A stretch of DNA of 64,000 nucleotides from Trichosphaerium sp. ATCC 40318. Taxonomy: Eukaryota; Protista; Tubulinea. Under the pieces are notes generated by a model. The model saw only the letters and a program-made list of their open reading frames with translations. It had not been told where the DNA came from and made no database searches. The translations under genes and the position numbers were made by a program. Of this stretch, positions 3,136-51,912 are shown one piece after another; position 1 is the first letter of the stretch, and each line of letters starts with the position of its first letter. The stretch is from assembly GCA_038496445.1 (NCBI GenBank), contig JALMLS010000197.1:62001-126000 (forward strand), written 5' to 3'.

Positions 3136-3466
3136 CACGTGAGCAATAGATGGAGAAGGTATTTAATGTTCCAGAGACACTTTTGGCTGTTTTGGAGCAA
3201 ACAAAGAGTTTTAAAGCGATCATAGCATTCTCCAGTACATACAAGCTCGCTCGCACCATCATATGCTCCCCACAGAATACAAAACAGTTATTTAAAGCCT
3301 CATGGTCCAATCCTTTGTATTATGGTACAATTCGCGAATGGCCAATGAAACTACGTGTAAACGACGATATATCTGACTTTGATGGATTACAATACCTCTG
3401 TTTTGCACGTCACTTGGAGAAACAATACCAGGTAAGCTATGTTTAACACGTGATTTCTAACACGTG
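3136..3466 (+). repeat. 331-bp inverted segmental duplicate of 9699-10029, both ends at CACGTG
   Basis: Direct alignment to the reverse complement shows about 4 substitutions; identity starts and stops at the CACGTG hexamers. Confidence 0.95.
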
Positions 3467-4063
3467 GGGAGCAACGAATAGATATTTATATGCTGTAAGT
3501 CTAAAGGATGGTATGTATGATGTTTCTTGTTTTTTTCTTGCTGTGTTAATTGTTGTCAGGTTCTAAATTGTGGAAAAAGAATGCAATACCCTTATGGCGT
3601 GGCATTATCAATGTTGATGGCGAGGGATATATATATCTATATTTGGCAAAATAGCCTGGAAACTGCAGTGATTGATATAAAAACTGGTGAACACGTTGGT
3701 GTTTTGAATCATCTCACTTACCATGTTGAAACTCAAGGCGAATTCATACTCATAGCTGATGAAAATATATTTACAAGTATAAAGAAGCTAACAACACATT
3801 CTATCTGGTGTGGAAGACAGGAATAATGAAACGCAAAAACATCAAACTTTTTCATTTACCTATGATCCCTATTGTGTTTCTCTGATGTTGATAACAATGG
3901 ACAAATTATTATGGATAGAAACAAGATACATGGGCCTGGACTTTATGTGGGCGTGCTTCTATTCAAGTGCGAGGAAAACAAGGCATTATTGTTCAAGCAC
4001 CTATATCAAATACAACAATTTGTCGTTGCATACATAGGCTGGGATGGAACGCAACACTGGTAA
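3150..4063 (+). pseudogene. Chimeric, frameshifted paralog of the 8719-10015 gene
   Basis: Exon 1 is ~99% identical to 9719-10015. The downstream part is a diverged paralog (ETAVIDIKTG vs ETAVLDIKTG; IGWDGTQHW vs IGWDGITKW). Most of exon 2 is missing, and homology (YKYKEANNTFYLVWK) continues only after a frameshift near 3770. Confidence 0.75.
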
Positions 4064-4728
4064 AGTGCTAAAGTGAAACATCTGTGGGATGATTGGGTTT
4101 ATGAGCGTAGCGGGAAAGTAGGAACCTGAATTGACTTAACGGGCCTTAAGGCACATGTTTCTTATGTAATGGTAGAACAAAAGGTCAAGGTTAATTATGT
4201 CATGTTTCATCATTTCGAGAAATATTGCACATTTGTTTTGCTGCTCGTACAGTCTTACACTCAGTATAGTAATTGGTTGTTGTACGGAATCTATCTTATG
4301 TAGCTACCAAAAGGCGTTCAAATCACTTCAGTACAGTAAAGTTTGTGCAAGCTAGGTTGGTAATAATCGCGGAGGTAGCTCACTACTATTTGGCAAACGA
4401 AAAGGGTAAATGTTCCAACCCAAAAAGCCTTTTTGCAGTAAGTAAAGTACTTTTTGATCACGTGACATGTGTTGACCGTAAACTCCTTAAGAGTTGTGTA
4501 TTGTACTACCTTCATCATAATAGCATTAAAGCCCTTTTAATGAACATACTAACCGAATAAGATCAAAAAAGATCCTTCTCCTTGGCCAGAATTCTCATTC
4601 AACTTATTCGCGTGTTCTTTGTGTTGTGTGTTACTGAAATACTACACAGCGTTATTATAATACAACAACGTAAGCATCGCTGTATTTCTTGTTCAATAAA
4701 CTGTCCTTTGGTGGTAGCAATCATATAA

Positions 4729-6159
4729 ATGACAACAGATACGTATAAAATAGTTATCGTTGGACCAGGAGGTAAGGAAATAGACGATATAATCTACTCA
4801 CGTTGTATTAAAACCGGTTAGGCGTAGGAAAGAGCAGCTTAACTCTCAGGCTTGTACAGAACTCTTTTATTGATAGATACGGTACGTTAATCGTTATCCA
4901 ATTCACTGAGTCCTGTCCAACACGTGAATGTTGAACAGGTATAGTCAGAACTTCCGAACAGTATTTTTGATTTAAACGAACTATACTCCGTTTATTTTGT
5001 TTTCCGTTGCTTTTAATTACTTCCTGGTATATGTATTTATCGTCTAATCGTGTTTTTAGATCCAACGATAGAAGACAGTTATCGGTGTGTTATTATATTC
5101 ACGAACTTTCTTTTTTTTTTTTGTACTTGATGATTAACCTTTGTTCTTTACAGGAAAACTGTAAATGTAGATGGTAAAAACGTTGATCTCGATATTTGTA
5201 CGTAATTTAACAAATACTTAATTATTAAACTACGCTCCCATCTTTTCAAAACCCCTCCTATATCACGTGACGCGCGGAGACAAAAAATAAAACATCATAA
5301 TTATTCTTTTTTTCTACTTTTTTTTGTGAATAAGACTTCCACGTGTTTGTTTCATTTACTGATTTTTTCTTTTTAAAATAGACGATACTGCTGGACAAGA
5401 AGAGTATGAGACATTACAAGATGGATACATGCGTAAAGGAGATGGTTTCATCATAGTTTTTAACATTGCCGATGAAACCAGCTTCAAACCAGATGTACTT
5501 CGATTTTTTGATAAACTTCAGAGGTACGTACAGATCAAACGGCAATTTTCAGCCAAAATACACCCTACCATGTATTTGTGATACTTGGTAATTGAAACCA
5601 GGAATTGAGCTTAAACGCCTTTTGCCTTACATAAAAAAATAATACTTTTTTTTTTTTATAGAGTGAAAGAATGCGATTCATTTCCGGTAAGTACTTGGTG
5701 TTGCGGTTTTTTTTTTGGTTTATTTTAAAACGTGTTAACCGTATTTATTTAGATGGTGCTCGTAGGAAACAAAAGTGACTTGGCGCATGTCAGACAAGTA
5801 ACAACACAACAAGGCGTTGAACTCGCATCGAGATTCAAGTACGATTTTATAAGAATTAAATTCCTTTTGCCAGGCTTTTTTGTTTGTAAATTCTGATCCA
5901 CTGTCAGTTGTCGGTATATAGAGACATCCGCAAAAGCCAATACAAATGTAGCTGAATGTTTTCATCAGTGCGTTAGAGAAGTAAACAAAGGTAAAAAACC
6001 AACAGATTAGTTCGAAAAAAAAAACCAAATCACTTTTCTCATATTTTTCTTGTAGAAAAAAAAGCAAATGAACCAAAGAAGGCTTGGACAAGTATAGGGA
6101 AACCCAAAGTACCCAAAATGCAACTAAAATTACGAAATAAATGCTGTAATATCCTGTAA
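4729..6159 (+). CDS. Ras-subfamily small GTPase (multi-exon)
   Basis: MTTDTYKIVIVGPGGVGKSSLT, effector loop YDPTIEDSYRK, DTAGQEEY, LVGNKSDL, ETSAK, C-terminal CCNIL* (CAAX with an adjacent Cys). Confidence 0.95.
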
Positions 6160-6442
6160 ATAAACTCTTTTGAACCACAGACTATCAAACTCACTGCATT
6201 GGTGATCAGCCAAGTTGGATTCTCATAACAATCGTCGATGTTGGTACAGTATTAACACTTATCATTGTTAGTTTTGTGGTCCACAATTGTCTTACACTAT
6301 CTAGATAGGAAAAACACCAAACTTACTAGATTCAACTTTAGTAGTACTGCACTATACTCCTGTTTGGTGTTTTAGATACTAGCTTCATGTACGGTGCTAC
6401 TAGCTTAGTATAAACTGTTGCTAATGGTAAAAGACAGCAAGG

Positions 6443-7336
6443 ATGTTCTCCAAAGTAAGTTTGTGCGATGATGGCTATATAGCTGTAGATCGCGATGGCA
6501 CAACACACTGGAATATCTCGGACGTAGGAAAGATAATAAACAAATCCGGAAACCTAAAACGCTTTGCTGTTGGTGAAAATGGTCAGTATTACCTTAAAAC
6601 CCGTAAAAGAAGGTATTGGCGTGTATCTAGCGATGATTTGGATGAAATAATAGAGGATGGAGCTTTCAAACGTATTTTCTTTGGACCTGGCTCCTCATAC
6701 TTTGTAACGTATTCATCGGGTTCATTTGAATACTCTGATATTCCTATGGATCTTCATAATAGATTACGAGGCCGTCAAAGGTCTCGCGGTGGCGTTAGAA
6801 CCATTGCTTTTTCTCATTACAAGTACTTCATACAGTTCACTGATGGGTCAGCTTGGTGGAGTAGTAATCTTCCAGATGCTATTGTAAAGTTTGTACGAGA
6901 CGAAGGGTATATTAAAGAAATAACAATGGCGAATGATTTTCGTGAATGGTATGTGAAGTCTAATAGCATGGAGTACTATTCTTCTGTATCCTTGAGAGCA
7001 ATTCAAAATGAAGTTGATGACGATCCTGATGATCTTGATCCGGATAGTATCTACTACACCAACAATTCAATAGCTCCGTACTTTCAAACAGGATCGTACA
7101 TATATGATGTCGTAAGTGACCTTGAAAATGGGTATTTGGATGCAGATGATATTCCAGCAATTCGAGTTGTTCGTTTAGATGGTGATTGGTATGCACTTGA
7201 CAATCGCCGTTTATGGTGCTTCAAGCAAGCTGGTATGGCAAGAATCAATGTACAAGCAGTGCCTAATAGATTGTCAAAACGTAGGATTCATTATTTGAAA
7301 TCGCATGATATGACTTACATTAATGTCAGAGGCTGA
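6443..7336 (+). CDS. Intronless 297-aa protein: N-terminal aromatic beta-repeats plus C-terminal ParB/Sulfiredoxin-like domain
   Basis: Uninterrupted ORF. Repeats FAVGENGQYYL / FFGPGSSYFV / IAFSHYKYFIQFTDGSAWW. C-terminus IYYTNNSIAPYFQTG...IPAIRVVRLDGDWYALDNRRLWCFK resembles the DNRRL-type ParB-like domains. Confidence 0.75.
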   Translation: MFSKVSLCDDGYIAVDRDGTTHWNISDVGKIINKSGNLKRFAVGENGQYYLKTRKRRYWRVSSDDLDEIIEDGAFKRIFFGPGSSYFVTYSSGSFEYSDIPMDLHNRLRGRQRSRGGVRTIAFSHYKYFIQFTDGSAWWSSNLPDAIVKFVRDEGYIKEITMANDFREWYVKSNSMEYYSSVSLRAIQNEVDDDPDDLDPDSIYYTNNSIAPYFQTGSYIYDVVSDLENGYLDADDIPAIRVVRLDGDWYALDNRRLWCFKQAGMARINVQAVPNRLSKRRIHYLKSHDMTYINVRG

Positions 7337-7559
7337 TGAGTTTAAAGTTAGTTGTAAATAGAAAAAACAATGAAGTCAGTAAATGCTGATCTTGGAACTA
7401 CAGGTGGGCTGTAGTGATCTGGTTTATCCTTATAACATTACCAATAAATTCTCGTTTTTCACCACGTGATTCTAAGCATTTAAGATAAGATGTTAGCAGT
7501 GGAGCTTCCTCAGAATCTACTTGACTTTCAAGGCTTCATTGACTCAACTTTGCGACAAG

Positions 7560-8143
7560 ATGATCAATTATGATTGTAAACTCGCTATTATTTCACGAAT
7601 ACAACCAAGGGATCTATTATCAATGTCTAGGGTAAATAAACAATGGTATGAAACGATTACAAGCACAGATGGTTGTAAAACGTCTCGTATATGGCCAGTT
7701 GTTATACAAAGAGGTCTAAAAGGATGGTTTAGCCGATATATACAATACAGAAACATTTTCTTTCGCCAGACGCATAAAGAGAACCAAAACATAGTGTATT
7801 TAATGTCCCGTGCGTTTAAACCACCTCCTCTTACTGGTGGAATGCGTGAAAGCCCACGTGAGAGCGCTGACTTGTCATTGAATCCCGATGGTTCATTTTA
7901 TTACCATTATTCTAAACGGATGAACTCATTCATTTCCACGAAACTCAAAGGTACTGCCAAAAACAACTGTTCAAGCTTTTTGTACAATTAATCATCAGCA
8001 GAGAGAAACGTTTCTCCTTAACTTTTTCAGTCCACAAACAAAGCACGTGGACAAAAGACTTACTTTTTAAATGGCAAAACTTTTCAACAAAATTTACAGA
8101 ATCTCTTAGGCACTTGGGCACTAACAAAGAAAAATGGGTATAG
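7560..8143 (+). CDS. F-box-like protein (probably one intron, ~7951-8029)
   Basis: N-terminal DCKLAIISRIQPRDLLSMSRVNKQWYETI fits the F-box pattern. A GT..AG splice restores an open frame to TAG at ~8143. Confidence 0.55.
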
Positions 8144-8718
8144 TGTAGAGCTGCGAGCTAATAAAAAGATCCACCAAAGTGGTCAAATTATGGACAGTTT
8201 CAGCACATATCGTCCTGTGTGGCGTGACTGTAAAGAAATCCTGATGGTCTTTAAAGTTAGAAGTAGAGGGAATAAGCTTTGTTTTAATACTATTAACTTA
8301 ACTATGACACTTGATCGGCGCATGTAGAGTTTGCTGACAAATAATCCCATGTATTAAATATCACTTCCACTTGTGCCTTGTAGATATAACGCTGCATATG
8401 GATAAAAAGCACATGTACTATAAAGTCCATATTTCTGAGTGGCGAAATGTAGTCTTTAGTTTTTACTTACTCAGACAAATGTGGGATTGCCTGTGATAGC
8501 TCTTATCAAATTGTCCAAGAGTTAATAATTATGGACTGACTTGTAAACTGTTGTATCCACATATAAATCAAATGATATGAGCAAAACGATTTGGGTTAAG
8601 ACAACTTGCACAAAAATAAAGAGTTCTTTTATTCATTCTCTTTACAGTTTTTAGTAATGGCCTAACCTGAAGAATTGTCTTTGTATGTAATAAAAAGATT
8701 GTATTGTAATGAAATCTG

Positions 8719-10015
8719 TTATTTTATGTCATGTTGCCATTTTGTGATACCGTCCCACCCTATACATTTGCTTTCTATCAGTTTTGTTGCTGAAAATACA
8801 ATGAATCCTTGTTTTCCTCTTATTTGAATTGAAATTTGGCCAATGTCATAAACAATGTAAGTTTTCACAACCCCTTCTAAGACAGCTTTCCCTTTATCAT
8901 TAATTAATCTTACAAGCAAGCGTCCTACTCTGAATCTTGTTTCCAAAAATAAAATGTATTCATTTGATAAAAAATACAGTTTTGTTTTGTATCTTGAAAT
9001 TTTTAATTTCCATAGCAGATTAAAAGCATTATTTTGCTCCTTGTATTTGTAAAGAAAGTTGTAATCAGTAACAAATACACAATTCATTTGTGAAACAATT
9101 TCGTTGAAAGCATGATCTAGAACATAAACTTCTATGCCAGTTTTAATGTCAAGAACTGCAGTTTCATCAAAGGCATGTCCTTTAAAGATGTAAACAAACT
9201 TGCCTTCTGCCACCATTTTATCCGGTGGTTTTTTTGAAGGGACTATATTTAATATATTCTTAGTCCACAAAGTTGAACCTAACAGTAACAAGTAAGAAAA
9301 AAACAAGAAGATCAATAAACATTTTTCATACCATCCTTAATATCTACAGCAAAAATATCTCTCTCAGTTACATTTCCCAATCTACATATTCTAACACAGA
9401 CCATTATACCACTTTGTTTGCTTATTGAACAGCCAAAAACGTAGTTGTTTTCTATTTCCCACAGTTTTGTGTTTGACATTGTACAAAATGCAGTAAACGT
9501 AGAGTATATGTCTACCTCCTCGATTATAGTTATATAACCAATATTGTAAACTACACGCGATCTATTTATGCCCGGTTCCCATATATTAGTGTCTACGCTA
9601 TGGCCATAGTGATACTCCAAAGCAAGGGGTGGTAGGCAAATCTTTTCGCCTGTATGAATATTGTAAACACCACCCTTCATTCGACACTCACTCTATGGCA
9701 CGTGTTAGAAATCACGTGTTAAACATAGCTTACCTGGTATTGTTTCTCCAAGTGACGTGCAAAACAGAGGTATTGTAATCCATCAAAGTCAGATATATCG
9801 TCGTTTACACGTAGTTTCATTGGCCATTCGCGAATTGGACCATAATACAAAGGATTGGACCATGAGGCTTTAAATAATTGTTTTGTATTCTTTGGGGAAC
9901 ATATGATGGTGCGAGCGAGCTTGTATGTACTGGAGAATGCTATGATCGCTTTAAAACTCTTTGTTTGCTCCAAAACAGCCAAAAGTGTCTCTGGAACATT
10001 AAATACCTTCTCCAT
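8719..10015 (-). CDS. 3-exon protein with F-box-like N-terminus and PQQ-like beta-propeller repeats
   Basis: Three ORF pieces joined by clean GTAAGC..TAG and GTATGA..TAG introns. Repeats such as IFAVDIKDGSTLWT, AVLDIKTGIEVY and AFCTMSNTKLWE. Confidence 0.65.
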
Positions 10016-10029
10016 CTATTGCTCACGTG
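9699..10029 (-). repeat. Second copy of the 331-bp CACGTG-bounded duplication
   Basis: Reverse complement of 3136-3466. Confidence 0.95.
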
Positions 10030-11247
10030 GTAATATCAAGTTTGTTCGTGCTGGTCAATTAGCTTCACGTGTACCTCTTGGCGCGCTTCAAAGATTCGTC
10101 TCCTACACCAATCCAATCATTTACAGCGATTTTCGCTGGCTCTTTCTCCGGTTCCACTAGACTACAAATTCCTTCAAAGCTTCAACACTTTTGTCTGCGG
10201 TTGTTGTCACAGTTGAGTTTGTAAGTATGGTCAGATGGCAAAGAGGAATGATAATGTGCAGATTCGGACTTGTAAGTGTTGATAGGTAGTGCAGGTGAAC
10301 AGTTTTACAATGTTCACTTTTAGTTGCACTTGATTCAGTACTGCGTGATTGTTTTTTGTCATATTTCTGCAATGAGTGCTTCAATTAGGTTGTTAAAATA
10401 CTAGGTAGTGCAGCTATTAATACTTGACTATTTCAGTAGCTAGCTATTGCGTATAAAGTGGCTTCTGATAGAGATTTTTGTTTTCGAAACAAACTCTGAG
10501 GCTACAAGAAAACAGACTAGTAGAAACGGAAGTTTTTCAGGAAGGTAGACACTGGTGTAGTACTTACATCCATTCCTGGGTCATTGGGCGGGCAAGAATC
10601 AGGTCATATTCTCCTGGGTAACATCTATCTAAATCTCGTGGCCAATTTGCCTTGCGAGTACCAAATGTTGTAGTTGGTAGTACAACCATATCGTAACCTT
10701 TCAGGTACAGTAAAAACATCTGTTACTTCTTGACTGCTACATCATGCAAAAGGTGAATCTTCATTTGTATGATGTGCCAGTCGAGGAGGAGAAGCTATGT
10801 TAATGATTCACTAACGTTAAATTGCTTTGCAATGAACGGGTGTTCTGAGCGATTCAACATTTTAGCAACGTTTTCAACACTATCATTTGTATCACGCATA
10901 TTCTACCCTCACTACTACTGACCCATTAATGCTTTGAGTAGTTTCCGTGTATTCTATAGTGAAAGCTTTCTTCAATGTGACATCAATGATGTGAGGAACT
11001 GTTCAAAGAATGTGGTAACAAAAACTTTTACCTATATCAATCAGTTACTCGCAACAATCTTTTCTGACGTTTATCTACTATATTGGTACTTGTTACCTTG
11101 TCGGGATACCATAGCCACCTAATGAAAGAGTGTCATGAGGATAATGGATACATCTTAAATGTGCATCTTGAAGTCTACTATCTGTTCGTAGAGATGCTTG
11201 TTCAGTATTTTTTCTTTAGTTTCTTTTGAGCTCAATCCCTTCTTTCT

Positions 11248-11566
11248 CTCCAAAGTTCTCTATTTGTTGCTTGTCTAACAACAGTGACAAGAGGCGAGGC
11301 TCCAAAGTTCTCTATTTGTTGCTTGTCTAACAACGGTGAGGGAAAATTATATTTATTGACAAATCATGATGCCTTCAATTATGATTTGTATAATTTGAAA
11401 CAAAAAAAGAGCACCTCACTCGTCACCGTTGTTAGACAAGCAACAAATAGATAACTTTGGAGCCTCGCCTCTCGTCACTGTTGTTAGACAAGCAACAAAT
11501 AGATAACTTTGGAGCCTCGCCTCTTGTCACTGTTGTTAGACAAGCAACAAATAGATAACTTTGGAG
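11248..11566. repeat. Foldback minisatellite: ~2 x 52-bp units, ~75-bp spacer, 3 x 52-bp units in inverted orientation
   Basis: Unit CTCCAAAGTTCTCTATTTGTTGCTTGTCTAACAACAGTGACAAGAGGCGAGG at 11248 and 11300; reverse-complement units at ~11414-11566. Confidence 0.95.
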
Positions 11567-12922
11567 GTTACAAAATAGGCTTGTGCCAAGCACAGAATAC
11601 GCTATTCAATGTCAATGTCATGTGCCGAATAGATTTCATTGTTCGTTCCTACACGCTTTTAGCAAGTTCCTTGTTGTACGTTTAACTGTATAAACGTACT
11701 GTAGTAGTCCAATGGTTGTAAATCATCAATGATTTCTTGCCACAGTTGCGGCTATTGTCTTTGGACATTTGAAGCACTGATTGATATTGTTTGTGGTGTA
11801 ACATATTCTAAAGCAATGTGTCAATAGTTAATTGTAACCTAAGACTGTACGTTTGTCGTTCTGAATATAAAGGAGAAAAAAATCTTTATATTGATGGGTA
11901 AGTTGGCATGGGACGGTAGACACACTTTGAACATTGATCCTTAGAAGAATGGTATTTTCACGTACCGTAATATAATGAGATTTGTAGACCATCAATTAAC
12001 AGAATTGTTGTAGTATCGACGTTGATGTTTCTGCAGTGTACACTTGGGGAGTGATAACAAACGACTATAATTGGTTACATTGTGCCATAATCCCTATGCT
12101 TCTGTTGTGCTCATTTATCTCAATGTAAACACTCCCGTAGTGAACACAAAACTATAAAATATTAGAGATTGATTTGCGTATCATGAGCTTGGTTAACACG
12201 TACAGAAGGGACTCAAGCAAAGAGTTTTTGATTGATTGTGGACGTCGTTAAGAAGTTTGAGAAGTGTTGTGATGCATGTGTATACTTTGAATAAATGTTT
12301 ATCATGATTGATTGTAGTTTATTAAATTTATTATGCTAGCGTAATATTTCACCCATCAGAATGTTGGGTGACTACTATTTGCACGTGCCATTACGTGCAA
12401 GTTCACATAAACTTGTTTACCAACAGCTGAACGATATTGACTCATTGCGAACAGTGTCAGCCATCAAAATAGCCTGAAAATATTCTGCAAGCCAATTCTA
12501 CGCGTGGAATTTGCAAGGCTGGTATTTAGATCGTTTCTGATGGAGTTTGGAAAATAACCGTGACACGTCATCAATCAAGGTAGATCAATTTCCATTGCAG
12601 CACTAGGAAATATTCAGTATTTGTACAGGAGTTAACACTAAGCCGAAACATCTAAATGCTGGACTGAAAACGGAAATAACAGCCACAGTTAATATTTTTA
12701 GATATTTTGTAGCGATGTTAGCTTACATTCAACAGATTTATTTTTACGGTTTAAGGCCCTGAATCTAGCGATAAGCAATCAACTACGACATTTGGTATTG
12801 ATAGTATAATTGTTTTATAGAAATTATACTTGTATCCATGCCTACATGGTGCACTTCAACTTACGAGTATCCACACCTTTCATTGACGATATTAAAAAGC
12901 AAATTGTTAGCGAACGTATACA

Positions 12923-18704: not shown

Positions 18705-20394
18705 GCTTTAGTGCTATTGTACGCTTTACAATTGCTCTAGAACCGGGAAAACAGTATAGCCAGATAAGTTCGGTGTTTCGTCGTAAGTCAAGCTCAAATA
18801 CGAGCCGGAGGTACATTTGTTCCGGGTTTTGCAATTGTATCGATGTACATAGAGTGTACCTGTTACTCTCAAATTGCAACTTCTCAAGGGAAGGGGGTAG
18901 TACACTACCGCCCCTTACCCTGTCCTGCAAAGACAACTGCCAAAAAGACAAACATGTGCCAGAAAAAAGTTGTTAAAAGATGAAATAGTAGAAAGTCCTC
19001 TTCTTCCCAGCAACGTTGTATTTCTCGGCAACAAAACCAAAAAGAGGTGATCGCGTAGTGTGCCTCGGATGTGCAGGGTACACAAGATGAATTTATCATC
19101 TGTCATTACCTTAGAGCACAAGGTTTTCAAGGGAAATTTTGTCGAAGTATTAACCACCGACCTTCCACCACTGAGTCACGGTCGCTACAAACAGCCTCGT
19201 TCTCCCGCACTCTGCAGGAAACAAGACAAGTCAGCAGCGCCACAACATAGCAGTGAGCCATTGTAGATTGGTTTATGGAACAAGGGTTTAGATAAGCGAA
19301 GTAAATTACGAAGTATTGTTTAAAGACCCTTGCTCCCTTACATTAAAACGAAGTATATCAATGGCCAGTCAGGCAGTTGGGAAGCACGACAACTATGCAC
19401 CTCGATTATAAAATGGAATCAACTGCGCTTTTATCCACGTGCCTCTTGATTAAAAAAAAAAGTGGGAAGAATGAAACGCCTGAAAAAGGTGATAGTGGGT
19501 TGCAAGATCGTTGGGAAGTAGTATCGAAAACACAAAAGAACTTGGTTCTTAGTTTCTGAAAAACGTGAAAACTCACTTTTTTTCAAATCAAAATGGGGAA
19601 ACTGTTTTTCGCTCAGAAAACGTTATTGGCAATTGATAGACCTTTTTATTGCGTACAGGGCACCATCAATTGAGTAACCTGTTAGCACGTTTCGCTCCAA
19701 GTAGCTTGAAAACCCTCAAACGACTGAAACGAGCTGTGACTATGTATGCCAGTGAAACAAATAATCAGTTTTGTGTGGACTTTGAACGTGCTGCCAGCAA
19801 AATGAATCGAACTGAATGAAACTTGAGACACGCGAAACTTGATGCTGTAGGAGAAATAGTTTAGATGTGTCCAACATTTGATTTTTAATACTCTGGTTAA
19901 ACGGGGCAGCATCGCTGTTGAAAATTCTGGAAAATATATGTTTTGAAAAAAATTGCTTGGACTGTCGGTACTTTTCCTTGGCACAGCATAAACGAATTGG
20001 AAAGTGGTTTTTATACCCATAAGTATAGCACCCTAGATACATGTTGAAAATACCAATTGAAGTTTAAGATGGTTCTGAGGTGAGTAAAAACGTCTCAAAG
20101 ATTCTCAAAATCCTATAAAAATCAACAAACAATTTTTCTGAAACTGTCCCAAAAGCGAGTGCTGCCCCACCCTTGTACAATTGTGGAACTAAGACAGATT
20201 CCAGTTAGTAAAACTTGTTTAATTGAAATGGAGGATGTTTCTACACGTCAAAGCACATATGGTAAAATAAAAAATAATACCCAAGAGAATCACAACCTCT
20301 TTTAAGTCAAAACTATTAAGCAAACCTTATATTAATAGCAACCATTACCACCATCGTTATCAACAACAAAAATAAGTGATAATTTCGTAGTTTA

Positions 20395-21093
20395 ATGGAT
20401 AGACAAAGCTACACAATCATTAATACACTGCCAATCGAAATATTGGTTAAAATAATGAATTCGATCCACAATACTGCTTGTTTACACTCTTTACAACATT
20501 CATGTACTTTCTTTCAAAGTATTATTCAACACCACTTTGGATACAAAGCATATCGTTCAGTTCATCTTGGAGATGAAAAACAACTCAAGAAAATGTACAA
20601 ATCATGTCGTTTACTTGTAAACAAATCTAAAATAAGAATTTTGTTCAAAATCAAACCAAAAACCATGAAAAAGTATCTTAAAGGTGTTCATACAATCAAC
20701 TTGTATCATCTCAATGTTACATATGATGGCATTAAATCATTGGCTGGTGTTCATACAATCAGTCTTTCAAACACAAATGTGACTGATCGTGGCATTAAAG
20801 CGTTGGCTGGTGTTCATACGATTGATCTGAGAAATACTTCAGTGACAGATGAAGGTATTAGAGAATTGGCTGGAGTTCATACAATAGATGTTGCATATAC
20901 ACAAGTCACTGATCATGGCATTGTATCATTGATTGGAGCACATACAATTAATTGTTCATATACAATCGTTACAGATGTAGCTGCTAAAGCATTGGCTGCA
21001 AATGGAGCAATTAAAGAAATCAATGTAATTTGTACAAAAGTGACATCTGAGGGTATTACAGCATTACTCACTTGTGCCAAAGTAGCTTGGTAA
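20395..21093 (+). CDS. Intronless F-box + LRR protein, 232 aa (copy A)
   Basis: INTLPIEILVKIM F-box and LAGVHTI repeats; near-identical to 30940-31638. Confidence 0.9.
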   Translation: MDRQSYTIINTLPIEILVKIMNSIHNTACLHSLQHSCTFFQSIIQHHFGYKAYRSVHLGDEKQLKKMYKSCRLLVNKSKIRILFKIKPKTMKKYLKGVHTINLYHLNVTYDGIKSLAGVHTISLSNTNVTDRGIKALAGVHTIDLRNTSVTDEGIRELAGVHTIDVAYTQVTDHGIVSLIGAHTINCSYTIVTDVAAKALAANGAIKEINVICTKVTSEGITALLTCAKVAW

Positions 21094-21145
21094 GATAATA
21101 AAATCAGGACGAACTTAAATACAATCTTAATTTACATAGAACAAC

Positions 21146-21365
21146 TTAAATGATTTCAAATGTAAGATTTATCCTTTCGCCAACTAGTTTTGGTTGCTTT
21201 ACTATTGTGTGCTTCCAGTGATGTTGTGTATCTCCAGCCATTACTATTAGAGATCCATTTGTTAACTTGAATTCTTTTTTCTCTGTTTTGTCATTGTGCT
21301 TGAGTGCAAAGCGCCTTGTGACACCCAAAGATACTGATGCAATCACGTTTTAACCCTAGAAATAT
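21146..21365 (-). pseudogene. Orphan duplicate of the last exon of the AlkB gene
   Basis: IASVSLGVTRRFALKH...HWKHTIVK...RINLTFEII with a piece of the preceding intron. No upstream exons (the ArfGAP 3' end lies there), and the terminal 2OG-binding Arg is lost. Confidence 0.85.
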
Positions 21366-27696: not shown

Positions 27697-29704
27697 ATGA
27701 CACAATCAACCGCTGCGTTAATAGCAACAGTGCTCTCACTAGCTTTATTTGTGGCTGCATATGAGAGAGGTGATCAATATTATGGCAGTAACAGTTATGG
27801 AGGAGGATACCAAGGAAGAGATGGAGACACGTATGAGGAATGGACACATGAAACTTGGTTTGATCGTATGGGCAACTCTCTAGTTGGTACGGCATCACTA
27901 TACAACCAATAAATCGGTATTTATGAGCGTAGGCGTCGGTATTGGGTTTGTAGTTCTTATTGGTACTGGATTCCTACTCTTCTGGAATGAAAAACGCGCA
28001 GTGAACCGTATCAGAGCGTTGAAGGTGAGTTTTTTATTTTTACAACTTCGTTACTTTAAAACGATGATACCCGTTACATGCGACACTGTGCTAAGATGAA
28101 TCCTAGGAAGGATCAGGACAAGTAGTTTCTGTTAGCACAGAAGGCGACAATTTGCGTCAATTTAATCAGTGCCTCATTCATACAACCGGACATGCAGCTA
28201 CGAACGATTTACTAAGCGATGAAGGTACACAGAACAAAGATAATTAATATTTCACGTACTTTACTAAAAATCGATTACCTCTCACCACTCAAGGCTTCTT
28301 TACTTCCAAAATCATTTGTTTTTACTTCTAGCACCACGTTAAAAGCATTTTAAAATAGTTTTACTATGTTTCGAGCTTACCAGACCCTAGATTTTGGCGT
28401 ACAAGTTCAAGCAATAAAGTTGATAAGATCTGTCCAAATCTACCAATGGAAAGAGACAAAACGCTCTCAAAAGTACAAAAATGTAGGTGGTAGTACTGAT
28501 ACGCGTCATACATACACCTACAATAAAGTTTGGAAATCAGATTTATCGTCAAGCCGAAGTTTTAGGTACAAAAAGTCCACTTCCTGTAAGTTTTCTTTCT
28601 TACCTTTTTTAAGGCATCCACAAGGTCATGAGAACCCATCTAAGTCACTGTTCGTATCTAAGACTACTACAGCAAATAATGTTATGATTAATGGGTATGT
28701 TCTGGTGGGTATGGCGTGTTTTAACTTCTGTTTAGAAGCTTGAGTTTATCACAAGACTTTATTTCGAAATTCAGTAACGTTGAAAAAATGACCTTCAATG
28801 AAGGATTATACAATGTTCTACCACCTCATATGCAAGGCATACTAAAGATAGCTAACCAACATGAATTATACTATGGTGTAAATCCAATGAACCCTCAGGC
28901 ATGTTTAAATTTTAGATATCAAAGGACAAAGCTAATTTTTTAACAGATTGGTGACATGAAAATAACTTTTTCACAAGCTCTTCCATGTACCGTTTCAGTA
29001 GTTGGAAAGCTTTCTAATGGTATACTTGTACCTCACAACACTTCAAATAATAGTAAAATTGCTCTTCTACAGGTAAGGATTGACACAAAGTTTTCTTTTC
29101 CTTTTCGCACATCTTGCCTTGAAAAACTTAACTACCATCTTTCGTTCTACTCACGTGGTTTATTAGACGGGAACCCACAAAGCAAATGATATGTTTAAAG
29201 CAGCAATGGCAGAAAATACATTTTTAACATGGATTCTAAGAGCCTTAGGGTTCTTTTTGAACTTTGTTGGATTTGCTCTATTATTTTCTCCTTTGTCTAC
29301 CTTTTTCGATATTTTACCATTTATTGGTGGTATTGTTGGATTTGGTACTTCACTAGGATCTCTATTACTCGGATTTATTGTATCAATTATCACTATTGCA
29401 GTTGCCTGGATCTTCTACAGGTAACGTATTTGCAATCAAATTTATGCTCAGTGACATCATTGTTACTCGTAAATTTCCTTGTTTTTTTACAATTTAGATG
29501 TGTTTTTTTTAAGTCGACTCAACTCAGTCCGACTCGACTTTTTGTAAAATCGGTCCGACTCGACTTAAGACTGAGTCGTTAACAGTACTAATTCTGACTT
29601 TTTAATTTAGACCTATTGTTGGCGTTGCACTCCTATCTGTTGCAGCTGTTATGATATTTGTAAGTAGCAAGGGTGGTGAATATGCTTCTACAGCTCATAG
29701 ATAA
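27697..29704 (+). CDS. TMEM43: TMEM43/LUMA (DUF1625) family membrane protein
   Basis: LLFWNEKRAV, KLIRSVQIYQWKE, YTYNKVW, GHENP, NPQIGDMKITF, ENTFLTWILRALG, IAVAWIFYRP. Confidence 0.9.
29510..29590. repeat. Short GACTCGAC-motif cluster in the last TMEM43 intron, possibly a MITE/transposon end remnant
   Basis: GTCCGACTCGACTT occurs twice, with inverted ACTCAGTC/GACTGAGT and AAGTCGA/TCGACTT. Confidence 0.45.
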
Positions 29705-29923: not shown

Positions 29924-30848
29924 ATGGAAAAGCACGTTGTGCGTCTGAGTTCTACTTCTAAGCAATCTAGTAATGTAAAACAAACAAAGAGAAAAGCAGT
30001 AGTTGACCTTAATAAAAGAAAGAAGCGGCTCAGAGCAGAGGAGAAGTACTATCCAACAACAACTACAGCGTACGTAACTGTTTGTTTTTGTACATAAACT
30101 GAAAAGTTTACAACTTCTCACCGAGTTGCGTTTACAATATCTCACTTATATCACTATATAACAATCTAAACTCTTCAAGAACCGGATTGACAAAGACAGT
30201 ACTACGATCTAATTCCGTCATTTTGTGGAAAGAGAACTTTGTTACTGTTGGCGAAAGTAAGAATATTTTCGACTTGCTTCGAAAGCAGATAAGTTGGCGG
30301 CAGTCAACAATAACTATATTTGGGAAGAAACTTAAATCTCCAAGATTGAATAACTGGATGGCAGACACGTGTACGGCGTAAAAGTAGATAGTACACGTGT
30401 AAATTTTATTGTCTATTTATAGCTGTACGACCATACTCCTCATCATCAACACCATGGTATCCAGAAGTTCTTGTTCTAAAGCAACGTATTGAGGAAGCAG
30501 TAGACTTTAAGTTTGACTACTGCCTCATACAACTATATAGAGATGGCAAAGACTCCATTGCGTATCATAATGATGAAGAGGCTCTTGGGAAAGTACAGCT
30601 CTTGTGCCATTGTTTATTATCTACTTAGGCATTTCTAGGGTAAAAACGTGATCGCATCAGTATCTTTAGGTGTCACAAGACGCTTTGTACTCAAGCACAA
30701 TGACAAAACAGAGAAAAAAGAATTCAAGTTAACAAATGGATCTCTAATAGTAATGGCTGGAGATACACAACATCACTGGAAGCACACAATAGTAAAGCAA
30801 CCAAAACTAGTTGGCGAAAGGATAAATCTTACATTTAGGAAATCATAA
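29924..30848 (+). CDS. AlkB-family 2OG-Fe(II) dioxygenase (ALKBH2/3-like)
   Basis: SPRLNNW, YRDGKDSIAYHNDEE (HxD), IASVSLG, HWKH, RINLTFR. Confidence 0.92.
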
Positions 30849-30939
30849 ACATGCATGCAAACCACTGCAGTTGATCAATTCTTAATAAACACATTCTATT
30901 TAAATTAAGATTGTATTTAATTTCATCGTTATTATTACC

Positions 30940-31638
30940 TTACCAAGCTACTTTGGCACAAGTGAGTAATGCCGTGATACCCTCAGATGTCACTTTTGTA
31001 CAAATTACATTGATTTCTTTGATTGCTCCATTTGCAGCCAATGCTTTAGCAGCTACATCTGTAACACTTGTATATGAACAATTAATTGTGTGTGCTCCAA
31101 TCAATGATATAATGCCATGATCAGTAACTTGTGTATATGCAACATCTATTGTATGAACTCCAGCCAATTCTCTAATACCTTCATCTGTCACTGAAGTATT
31201 TCTCAGATCAATCGTATGAACGCCAGCCAACGCTTTAATGCCGCGATCAGTCACATTTGTGTTTGAAAGACTGATCGTATGAACACCAGCCAATGATTTA
31301 ATACCATCATATGTAACATTGAGATGATACAAGTTGATTGTATGAACACCTTTAAGATACTTTTTCATGGTTTTTGGTTTGATTTTGAACACAATTCTTA
31401 TTTTAGATTTGTTTAGAAGTAAACGACATGATTTGTACATTTTCTTGAGTTGTTTTTCATCTCCAAGATGAACTGAACGATATGCTTTGTATCCAAAGTG
31501 GTGTTGAATAATACTTTGAAAGAAAGTACATGAATGTTGTAAAGAGTGCAAACAAGCAGTATTGTGGATCAAATTCATTATTTTAACCAATATTTCGATT
31601 GGCAGTGTATTAATGATTGTGTAGCTTTGTCTATCCAT
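30940..31638 (-). CDS. Intronless F-box + LRR protein, 232 aa (copy B)
   Basis: About 5 amino-acid differences from copy A at 20395-21093. Confidence 0.9.
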   Translation of the reverse strand: MDRQSYTIINTLPIEILVKIMNLIHNTACLHSLQHSCTFFQSIIQHHFGYKAYRSVHLGDEKQLKKMYKSCRLLLNKSKIRIVFKIKPKTMKKYLKGVHTINLYHLNVTYDGIKSLAGVHTISLSNTNVTDRGIKALAGVHTIDLRNTSVTDEGIRELAGVHTIDVAYTQVTDHGIISLIGAHTINCSYTSVTDVAAKALAANGAIKEINVICTKVTSEGITALLTCAKVAW

Positions 31639-32634
31639 TAAACTACGAAATTATCACTTATTTTTGTTGTTGATAAAGATGGTAACGGTTGCTATTAATG
31701 TAAGGTTTGCTTAAAGGTGTTGACTTAAAGGAACTGAATATAAACAAGATTGTGTACGCTGAACTGTTGGCGCTTTCATGGCGGTACACGTCAAAGTGCA
31801 AAAATACTTCTACGTCGTTAGCATAGTATTTGTAGGTTAGGTACCGACTGGACAATGTACAAAGGTATTACAGTTGGTGTATTGAAGGGCCAGTCGAACG
31901 TTAAGTTCTCTGTTGTCAAGATAAAATCTTGATGACTGAGCGGCATTGTTGGTAGTTTGAGTTAAATAAAAGGGTTGAAAGGGCGCAGCCATGCTCAAAA
32001 AGGATACGCTTCGGAATTGCAATTCTTTCGAAACGAGAAGAGCAAATGCTATTTATTTTTGTTGCTCACACTCTCAAGCTCGTTGAGGAGTGCAAGCTTA
32101 GCTACCTGTTCTTCTTTTACGATTTTTGTGGTCATATCACACAACAAGATACAAGTTACGCTTGTTGCGTACCTGTTGCATGATAATTAGAGGCATTTAG
32201 CTAACGCTGTGTTGAGCGAACGACAACAAGTGGTAGCAAGTATTATAAGCCCTATGTGGCTTCTTCGTCGGAGAAAACATAGCAAAGCATGTTGAGTTGC
32301 TTTGCAATGCAACGTTGATGATTGGCTATAGTCGTCTTTGATGAGGAACGATCCGTTGTGTAGTGTTGAAGGTGAGAGATTTTTGGGTTGCACGTTTAAA
32401 AATAAACGTGCAGAAAGGCTCAAAGCTCATTGGTGGTTTTTTTTTGCTAAATAAATTAGAACACGTGCAAATTCAATGGACTTTTTCAACGTGGTAAAAC
32501 TTGCCAGGTTCATTGAAATACCGGTTTAGATTGTACACATAGTACCCACGCCAATGCGGTGAATAAACAGAAATTCATTGTTGGCTTACTTTGTTAAACC
32601 TTGAAGTACACTTAAACAAAAGAGAAATGTATGT

Positions 32635-46397: not shown

Positions 46398-48641
46398 ATG
46401 TTGTCGCGGTTATACAGGTACTCGTACTAAATGCAAGAGAATGGCCTAATCTAACAGTGTAATAGGGCTACAAGTGTCCGTACAGCTGTTAGAGCCTCAC
46501 GCGGTGTTCAGCAGCGACGATCCTACTGTGTGAATATATTGTACGCGCAACGGCCAGCAATTGTAACTAAATAGATGTAGTGGCGGTCAAGAACAAAAAC
46601 CTTTGGAAGCAGTCAAGCCAAAGGCAGAATTGGTATTGAAACGCGTAGATGAGATCGCAAAGCTAGCTGCAAAGCATTTGTATGCGAATGAGTTTAAAGA
46701 AGCAGCCCAGTATTACGAAAGTGCTTTGGACTTAACAACTTCGGTTTCAGCGGTATGTAGAGCGTAACGGCATCATTCTTGATAGTATTGACGCTCTTTT
46801 ATTTCTTTGCCTTCAAAATTGCTTGTTTGAGCTATGTGCCATGTATTTCGCTGACGTGTTTCATTCTAGGATGAATTATTAGTAGTTCGCGCTAAAGTAA
46901 ACTTGGCATACGCTTATCACAACATGGACAAAATAAGTGAAGCTACAGAGTTGTATAAGAATATTGATACCCTAGAAAAACTACTTGGCGCAGAAGACCA
47001 AGAAGTTAATATTGCAAAGATAAATTATGCTGAAATACTAGCCAAAGAAAAGAAGTACGTACTCAAGAAGGCGTGATATGTTGCTTCGGAAGGCTTTTTT
47101 TGTTATAAGTCGCTTTGAATGCTGATTTTTTTTTTTCAAGGATGGAAGAGGCTGAGAGATACGGTAGAGAAGCTGTAGGTGTACTTGAACGTCATAGACG
47201 TACTGATGAATTTGTTGCTGCCGCTTTGAGTAATTTATCTGGATACCTTGGCGTACAAGTACGTTTTTTTTTTTTGGTTCTTCTCAGTTGCAAAGATTGG
47301 GTTATTGATTTCGTCTTTTTTCTAGAAAAAATACAAAGAGTCCTTGAAATACGCAAGTAAAGCCCTACGCATGACTGAAAAGCATCTTGGACGTAACAAT
47401 TCTGTAACAAAGACAGTATTTAGTAACTACTATTCTCTGTTAAAGCTTGCTGGAGACGAGAAGGGCTTAGCAGGTACAACAATATAACCAATATCAATTT
47501 TTGAAAAATTAAAATCTTGTCGTTCTTCTACTTCGTTTTTTATTTCATTTTACTCACTTTGGTTTTAGATTTGGAAGCAGATTGGAGCACAGAAACAGGT
47601 GAACCAGATCGCGCAGCAGATGAGCTTCTTGAAAAGACACAAAACGGCGAAATTGAAATTGATGATACAGAAACGCCAAGTGAGCGTGGGAAGACCCCTA
47701 AAAAGGATGAAAAAGCTGATACAGAAGCTAAAGAAGATGGAGAGGGTAAAGAAGACAAAGCAGATGCAAAAGAGTCAAAAGAAGAATCAAAGGAAGAAAG
47801 TACTGAGGTTGCAAAAGCTGATGAAGATAAAGAGTCTACTCCTGAAGAAACAAAGGAAGGTGATGTGCCACAAACAAAGGAAGACGCAAATGTATCAAAA
47901 GACGCTGAGAGACTTGGAAAGTACGTGTTGTTTGTGTTTTTTTTTTGGATTTGTTGTTGCAACAAAGTTGTCCGTTTACTGATTGTTTTTTCTTATTAGG
48001 TTTGAAGACATTTACAGAAAAACTCATAAATCTCAACCTAAAGGATTTGTAAAAGATCCTGATTTTGCCAAGAAGGAGTTAAGTGAGTTTATGGACTTAT
48101 GGTCTGAAAGAGGTATGGTTCTGTTACATTTTGAGGCGAAACAACAATCGCTTTTTTTTGTTTCCATTTTTGATGTTGCTTAATTGTAAGGCGTTGACTT
48201 AACTTTTTTGTTTTAGATCCAAAAATCGATTTATATGATCCAGCTTACGCTAAGGTTCTTCAGCAAGAAACTGACGCCATTGAGTACCACGAAAAACTTG
48301 CTAAAGAGCGTATAAAGACTGTAAGGAGAAAGGTTGATGAAAATGTCTTGTCACAAGGTTTATCTGAGGAAGAGAAGAGAGATTACGCTAAAAAAGCAGA
48401 AATATACTTTAATCAGATATCTGCTTCAGGATTTACTAAAGATCAATTGTCGTCTATGATAGATGAGACTGTTTTCGATACAGACCAACTTCTTAAGTTT
48501 GGAAGGAGTCAATTTGGAGCTACACAAGAAGAACAAGAAGCTACACTTGATAGAGAGACAGATGAAGCTTTTGAACAACTTGGAAAACAAGTTGTTAATA
48601 CTATTACAGAAGAAGAAGTAAACAATGAATCTCATGAATAA
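46398..48641 (+). CDS. TPR-repeat protein with predicted mitochondrial presequence and acidic insert
   Basis: MLSRLYRATSVRTAVRASRGVQQRRSYC (Arg/Ser-rich, no acidic residues). TPR helices AKVNLAYAYHNMDKISEATELY and AAALSNLSGYL. Glu/Lys-rich region. Confidence 0.7.
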
Positions 48642-48874
48642 AATAAATAAAAAATAAATTCAGAAAAACATCTTCTTTGTTGACTGATCCCCTCAGGCCC
48701 AAGACAAGGTAAACTAGTGACTGACAAGTCTGTCCATCACGACATAGTGACTACGTAACAATATAGGATAAACACCCTGGGTTTATATGAAGCACGATTT
48801 CGAAAGATAGATTCTTCGGCTGCCATTTTGTACCACAGTTAAGTTAGTTTTGGCTTCCACAAAAAGCACTACAA

Positions 48875-51741
<2,867 letters not shown>

Positions 51742-51912
51742 TGAGGGGTAGCGCTTGGAGAGAGTAGAATAAAACGAAAGTTCTGAGTTTGCATCTTTTT
51801 TTTCCTGTTTTTCTTGTCCCATTGCTTGAAAGAGAAGTTATTTTTGTCTTCGATTTTTCCCTCTACCAATACTATGTGCATTAAATAACATGGACATCAC
51901 GTTTTTTTCGTA

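Follow-up and report, generated by a model that had tools for sequence, protein, structure and literature searches.

Does the palindrome CACGTG mark a place at which DNA is cut or exchanged in the amoeba Trichosphaerium sp. ATCC 40318? The question is raised by an inverted repeat of 331 nt in a stretch of 64,000 nt from its 70-Mb, 36% GC, intron-rich genome (assembly GCA_038496445.1, contig JALMLS010000197.1, positions 62,001 to 126,000 of the forward strand; this whole stretch is called the window below). Both arms of the repeat begin and end exactly with CACGTG. One arm is the 5' end of an intact, transcribed gene, here called B; the other lies in a decayed, inverted paralog, A. A sequence-only reading of the locus had proposed that CACGTG acts as a cut, recombination or template-switch site that had created a chimeric gene. 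Our analysis leads to a more ordinary answer. We hold it to be somewhat probable that the arm in A is a tract of non-allelic gene conversion (ectopic repair) copied from B. The A/B pair is best read as conversion from a paralog to a pseudogene, because other repeat ends, the junctions of insertions and deletions (indels) and the other tracts of the gene family ignore CACGTG.

A repeat search and blastn agreed on the extent of the repeat, copy A at 3136-3466 on the forward strand and copy B at 9699-10029 on the reverse strand. Over their 331 nt the copies are 98.8% complementary and differ by four substitutions (at 3266, 3273, 3287 and 3327) and no indel, so the inverted duplication of about 99% identity with CACGTG at both ends was borne out. 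At these four sites A has C, C, G and A, respectively. Each arm opens and closes with the six bases of the palindrome. A third CACGTG is internal to each arm (3447-3452 in A, 9713-9718 in B), and another is found at 10066, 37 nt outside copy B. The parts of the repeat are as follows, with UTR standing for untranslated region and cDNA for complementary DNA.

3136-3466, forward strand: copy A, the putative recipient patch, which runs from CACGTG over 8 nt of 5' UTR and exon 1 (3150-3431, 94 codons) into intron 1, of which it holds 35 nt up to and including the terminal CACGTG
3431, forward strand: end of exon 1 in copy A, as fixed by loose ends of cDNA
3136-3141, no strand: terminal CACGTG at the left junction of A, with an upstream flank unrelated to B
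3461-3466, no strand: terminal CACGTG at the right junction of A, close to the internal CACGTG
3266-3327, forward strand: 62-nt core holding all four differences between A and B
9699-10029, reverse strand: copy B, the likely donor, the same 331 nt within an intact gene
10024-10029, no strand: terminal CACGTG in the 5' UTR of B, at -14 of the ATG and roughly 18 nt downstream of the transcription start
9699-9704, no strand: terminal CACGTG in intron 1 of B, 6 nt before the 3' splice site, next to the second intronic CACGTG
9376-9698, reverse strand: segment of B without a match in A, an approximately 323-nt deletion that defines the right junction of A

The two ends of the repeat differ in what lies beyond them. 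At the left end the flanks of A and B are unrelated (17% identity over 30 nt). Past the right end, A resembles the tail of exon 2 and the start of exon 3 of B, with 72% identity over 112 nt; blastn aligned A 3480-3582 with B 9360-9256. Between these blocks A has no counterpart to about 323 nt of B, from 9698 to about 9376, a stretch that takes in the final 6 nt of intron 1 and the greater part of exon 2. Thus the structural description holds: exon 1 has been newly copied in inverted orientation and abuts the remains of an older, diverged paralog from which most of exon 2 is missing. The peptide alignment proposed across the join was also roughly right, since tblastn paired TNRYLYAVSLKDG with TERDIFAVDIKDG. 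We could not confirm that the join had used a CACGTG already present in the coding sequence of A: at the matching position of its exon 2, B carries AGATTG.

The differences between the copies are not spread evenly. All four fall within 62 of the 331 nt (clustering p = 0.021), and the flanking 130 and 139 nt are identical. Two of the four are synonymous and two non-synonymous, all in the 282 nt of exon 1; the UTR part (14 nt) and the intron part (35 nt) of the repeat show no difference. The clustering fits a mosaic tract, or a core that escaped conversion, better than a pasted fragment with later random mutations.

Gene B has the structure of an intact gene.

8719-10047, reverse strand: gene B, with transcription start at about 10047 and the stop codon at 8721-8719
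10015-9734, reverse strand: exon 1 of B (94 codons)
9733-9693, reverse strand: intron 1 of B (41 nt)
9692-9332, reverse strand: exon 2 of B
9331-9279, reverse strand: intron 2 of B (53 nt)
9278-8722, reverse strand: exon 3 of B

The sole cDNA contig on the repeat (from run X1) has the base of B at all four differing sites. At its 5' end, the SMART template-switch oligo precedes 18 nt that belong to B itself, upstream of the repeat. This indicates that the transcript of B begins near 10047 and that the left end of the repeat lies inside the 5' UTR of B. At the end of exon 1, cDNA contigs continue into the exon-2-like start AGTGAGTG, the printed consensus of both being nearer to a paralog than to B; splicing of B's own exon 1 to its exon 2 is likely. 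In the only B-derived contig, 67 nt of the conserved exon 1 (window 3159-3225, corresponding to B 10006-9940) are missing; the skipped piece has GT..AG ends. Such a skip would shift the reading frame and may be a minor or aberrant splice form. Directly upstream of gene B there is a dispersed repeat (window 10095-12718) with copies of 76-97% identity on contigs C11, C594, C600, C93, C479 and C16; within it, at 11248-11574, 52-nt tandem units form an inverted (fold-back) array.

Copy A is continued by a remnant of quite another quality.

3467-4063, forward strand: old remainder of pseudogene A, with about 44 nt of the exon 2 tail (3467-3510), an intron-like part (3511-3559) and, interrupted by frameshifts and stops, a part resembling exon 3

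In its alignable parts this remainder is about 72% identical to B; elsewhere no alignment is possible. By tblastn it matches the exon 3 protein of B in two frames with several stop codons. A is without the transcription start of B. In four cDNA runs the RNA depth over 3470-4257 was zero, no contig carried the alleles of A, and cDNA appeared only with those of B. When A was examined as a functional chimera, neither an open reading frame across the join nor transcription was found. The frameshifts and stops, the missing transcription start and the missing RNA coverage together identify A as a patched pseudogene. Hence A is a decayed paralog with a renewed 5' end and not a new functional chimera, and the "chimeric gene" of the sequence-only reading has to be given up. 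Between A and B lies a highly expressed gene for a Ras-like GTPase (window 4269-6179), for which cDNA contigs from three studies give a SMART oligo start at 4269, a poly(A) site at 6179 and at least eight GT..AG introns.

Since neither the four private bases of A nor its two junctions appear in any read or contig, the patch might be thought an artefact of assembly or polishing, with reads of B mis-assigned to A or with A itself being a mis-join. We regard this as very improbable. The copies differ by substitutions without any indel, and the 331-nt inverted patch sits inside a long contig exactly where the remnant of a true paralog has its 5' end; such a result corresponds to no known assembler failure. 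The B side is moreover backed by independent cDNA.

If the patch is real, its near identity calls for an explanation. Across UTR, synonymous sites and intron the patch keeps an identity of 98.8%, compared with about 72% for the rest of A where it can be aligned; this argues for a recent transfer and not for selection. Selection as the cause of the identity is ruled out in our view, as the UTR and intron are identical and the synonymous sites nearly so. A mobile element with CACGTG termini was rejected as well: the genome contains only two copies, the next best match (82%) covers exon 1 only, and the inverted terminal match consists of the 6-mer alone. An RNA-mediated copy does not fit either, because the patch starts 18 nt downstream of the transcription start of B and holds intron sequence.

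The direction of the transfer is most likely from B to A, because B keeps the normal structure of the family and the family base at 3266 and 3327. At these two of the four differing sites B has the near-universal base of the paralogs; at the other two the base varies among paralogs. The repeat, its ends, the state of A and B, the recurrence in the family and the negative survey described below are observed; this direction, the process (conversion) and which of deletion and conversion came first are inferred. In such a scheme the inverted sister paralog A, at a distance of 6.2 kb, would have had its 5' end overwritten with that of the expressed gene B. The transferred stretch would run from CACGTG in the 5' UTR through exon 1 to nucleotide 35 of the 41-nt intron 1. 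The tract would stop where pairing between A and B runs out, on the left at the 5' edge of the block of family homology and on the right at the deletion of about 323 nt in A, which starts in the CACGTG-rich intron 1. On this side the identity drops, after the gap, from 98.8% to 72%. The deletion could have existed before the conversion, could have arisen later, or could have formed when the newly copied strand re-annealed through a microhomology of a few bases. Given the AGATTG of B, two to three bases (TG or GTG) of microhomology might have been enough. CACGTG may have been the microhomology at the deletion, and no machinery recognising the word would be needed.

Evidence for such transfers comes also from the gene family to which A and B belong. 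About 13 further relatives of exon 1 are found in the genome, with 74-82% identity. Their exon-1 peptide of about 94 residues is strongly conserved (mean column identity 82% over eight members). Two pairs of neighbours resemble A/B at and around exon 1 (-100 to +300 relative to the ATG). For L006/L007, which lie 36 kb from each other on C131, identity is 95-100% in exon 1, as opposed to 35-92% (mostly 52-85%) outside it; for L008/L010, with a distance of 31 kb on C23, the values are 92-100% and 47-90%. The exon-1 differences, synonymous sites included, amount to 9 of 276 nt in L006/L007 and 9 of 282 nt in L008/L010. L008 has ATT instead of a start codon. It thus looks as if the N-terminal exon of the family is repeatedly homogenised between neighbours while the C-terminal part diverges.

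A precedent for the deletion exists as well. L011 is without 53 nt of exon 1, and the loss falls exactly between 11-nt direct repeats AAATAGTTTTA (L011:1501-1560 compared with L005:1520-1610). Judged from this sequence context it is a textbook deletion by slippage or microhomology-mediated end joining (MMEJ). L005 and L011 lie on different contigs and are otherwise 97% identical over 3 kb. Both the recurrence in L006/L007 and L008/L010 and the direct-repeat deletion in L011 were counted in favour of conversion. Another arrangement was seen in L013 (C206) and L014 (C194): at about 1500-1640 the 3' end of an exon-1-like sequence enters a different downstream sequence, shared by the two, without a splice donor. 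In L014 a CACGTG lies 12 nt beyond the end of the family similarity.

The left end of the A/B repeat can be compared with a third pair. L003 and L004 are inverted and 13.7 kb apart; their identity of 95% reaches from -14 of the ATG through the stop codon, and outside these limits the sequences are unrelated. Their left edge coincides with that of A/B within 3 nt in homologous sequence (GTCGCAATA in the one case, GTGAGCAATA in the other), and no CACGTG is present there. Because the two edges coincide without the palindrome, the left end of A/B appears to be the 5' edge of pairable sequence in the family.

The presence of CACGTG at both ends can be accounted for by its being very common in these two contexts, the edge of the 5' UTR and intron 1. 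Among B and 11 paralogs, 10 of these 12 genes have one or two copies in intron 1, which amounts to about 25 per kb, against 0.9 per kb genome-wide. Its usual context there, near the 3' splice site and common to B and most paralogs, is CTAACACGTG. In the 100 nt upstream of the family ATGs the density is about 6 per kb. In intron 1 of L002 to L012 (about +290 to +335 from the ATG) the palindrome usually follows CTAAC or TAAC directly, a few bases before the 3' splice site; CTAAC/TAAC is likely the branch point. This adjacency may bear on the richness of CACGTG in the short introns of the genome.

Several observations weigh against gene conversion as an explanation of the patch. Both ends lie exactly at the outer edge of a CACGTG, for which the probability is 8e-7 at the mean density of the word. 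With the raised local densities, the double coincidence has a probability of 1e-5 to 3e-4 per repeat pair, and about 0.01-0.1 such cases are expected in the whole genome under realistic assumptions (with about 12,000 repeat pairs, an extrapolated number). Furthermore, older homology is entirely lacking on the left side of the patch. A classical conversion tract needs pairing outside the tract, and thus the tract must have reached the very edge of the block; indeed it includes three bases, CAC, beyond the edge seen in L003/L004. Conversion also needs two events, the conversion and the deletion, or a hybrid event. Finally, the junctions of A were seen in no DNA read, the runs being of cDNA only.

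The patch could instead have arisen by a template switch in a single step, comparable to microhomology-mediated break-induced replication (MMBIR) and fork stalling and template switching (FoSTeS), or to synthesis-dependent strand annealing resolved by microhomology. A broken or stalled end in the old A would have annealed at a CACGTG of B, copied 331 nt and returned to A at CACGTG or GTG, whereby the old exon 1 to exon 2 part would have been replaced at once; CACGTG would then be merely a common microhomology of 6 nt. By this, patch and deletion would result from one event, both junctions being non-homologous joins with six shared bases. The inverted orientation and the loss of about 323 nt are typical of such events, and the TG of B at the matching exon-2 position makes a microhomology of at least 2-3 nt plausible at the right join. 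Yet at about 0.9 per kb CACGTG is no commoner than AT-rich hexamers are in a genome of 36% GC, and generic microhomology would choose it at both joints in less than 0.1% of cases, by our own estimate from the densities. In addition, the patch replaces exactly the homologous 5' part in the right orientation, with its left end at the edge of family homology, which points to homology-guided pairing, and CACGTG is used at no other repeat end or indel in the 264 kb surveyed (see below). We therefore consider a template switch unlikely.

The coincidence at the ends could instead reflect a process specific for the motif: a nuclease that cuts between CAC and GTG, followed by re-ligation or repair, or a CACGTG-bound protein that halts strand exchange. 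All four ends lie exactly on the palindrome, with the chance expectation of 0.01-0.1 cases per genome given above, and the excess of the word in the genome implies some motif-specific force. The window contains 56 copies against 9.9 expected (about 0.9 per kb), and in a 200-kb block of contig C9 (560001-760000) the density is likewise 0.9 per kb. In one copy of an older repeat the end falls in the middle of the palindrome, between CAC and GTG; in L008/L010 the upstream edge is found at CACGTG/AACGTG.

A motif-specific process predicts an enrichment of CACGTG at other junctions. These were surveyed in 264 kb, about 0.4% of the genome, consisting of the window and the C9 block. Self-alignment at a threshold of 88% identity gave 44 repeat pairs, a good many in inverted orientation; A/B was left out of the junction counts. 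Among 167 distinct copy-ends at this threshold, one had a CACGTG starting within -9 to +3 nt (1.5 expected), and at none was the palindrome exactly terminal. When the threshold was lowered to 80% identity, one of 473 copy-ends had it within the same interval (4.4 expected). Of the indels of 8-49 nt between copies, 0 of 34 had CACGTG at the junction. Ends that close on the half-site CAC in both copies numbered 2 of 84, with about one expected. About eight further ends, of window repeats with copies elsewhere in the genome, had no CACGTG within 10 nt on the window side. The window repeats with copies elsewhere whose ends are without CACGTG are these:

18974-20091: repeat with a copy elsewhere in the genome
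29484-29590: element of about 107 nt with internal inverted repeats of the GTCCGACTCGAC type and 93-99% copies on at least four other contigs
47527-47835: 90% piece beside the C86 copy of the next repeat
48768-51773: 3-kb stretch with a 93% copy on C86 (126600-129604), containing four internal CACGTG, none of them terminal

The element at 29484-29590 looks like a miniature inverted-repeat transposable element; ARAGORN found no transfer RNA in it. A second inverted pair in the window (20298-21363 and 30631-31732), 96% identical and 9.3 kb apart, has no CACGTG at its ends either. Each of its arms carries an open reading frame of 232 amino acids with LRR_6 repeats and a weak F-box-like match.

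The enrichment predicted by a motif-specific process is thus missing at the 167 and 473 ends, at the 34 indels and at the CAC half-sites. Against it stands also that the internal CACGTG at 3447 was not used and that the other exon-1 tracts of the family end off the motif; nor is there a candidate enzyme, although no search aimed at one was made. As far as a sample of 0.4% can show, rearrangements do not generally have their junctions at CACGTG, and for the proposed cut, recombination or template-switch site the usage at junctions is no more than background. We give a nuclease or protein barrier of this kind little credence. It is doubtful, to a similarly high degree, that CACGTG is a preferred end-point of strand exchange or breakage, be it as a cut site or as a protein-bound barrier to conversion tracts, and that the patch is a rare footprint of the process that over-represents the word. 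In full-text literature searches no paper was found that describes CACGTG as highly iterated or as an end-point of recombination, the two papers that matched for the latter having titles on other subjects. If true, a link between CACGTG and recombination would provide a mechanism for the excess of the word.

The paralogs had also been called F-box-like. The exon-1 peptide gave no Pfam match at E <= 1, the F-box profiles PF00646 and PF12937 included, and a profile of eight paralogs found no F-box chain in the PDB. Its protein language-model features score 0.91 to F-box clusters, a weak hint, and the AlphaFold2 (AF2) model of exon 1 is poor (pLDDT, the predicted local distance difference test, 59). 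The designation is therefore not borne out by Pfam, and the exon-1 family is possibly F-box-like. An unrelated open reading frame between A and B (7521-7991) encodes a true F-box protein according to Pfam. In nematodes and plants, F-box families have expanded with a conserved N-terminal box and a fast-evolving C-terminal part. The exon-1 family resembles these adaptor families in its conserved N-terminal exon of about 94 residues, its fast-diverging remainder and its clustered paralogs and pseudogenes; unlike them, it has no F-box recognised by Pfam.

How does the locus compare with known systems? HIP1 (GCGATCGC) is a highly iterated palindrome of cyanobacteria. Like HIP1, CACGTG is a short palindrome that is over-represented many-fold, 56 copies compared with 9.9 expected in the window; unlike CACGTG here, HIP1 is bacterial. 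Neither word has been shown to mark the ends of rearrangements, and our 264-kb survey gave no such link.

With FoSTeS/MMBIR and MMEJ the A/B repeat shares non-homologous joins with a few shared bases, inverted copying and a deletion. In contrast to FoSTeS/MMBIR, the microhomology would comprise 6 nt and be the same word at both joints, and the insert is a homolog of the piece that it replaced.

Interlocus gene conversion between nearby inverted paralogs is known from the microconversions between CYP21A2 and its pseudogene and from the arms of Y-chromosome palindromes. The repeat differs from cases of the CYP21A2 type in that the pseudogene, A, is the recipient, and in that the tract reaches both edges of the pairable sequence, with the same 6-bp palindrome at each. 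Unlike a classical conversion tract, it has no older homology beyond its left end. It agrees with interlocus conversion in that a tract of a few hundred bp is nearly identical within older inverted duplicates a few kb apart, that the donor is unchanged and that the pattern recurs in the family. A/B would then be a new example of a known process, gene conversion between paralogs, with a residual curious coincidence. The lasting picture is that of a clustered, possibly F-box-like family in which neighbours stay alike in their first exon and drift apart in the remainder.

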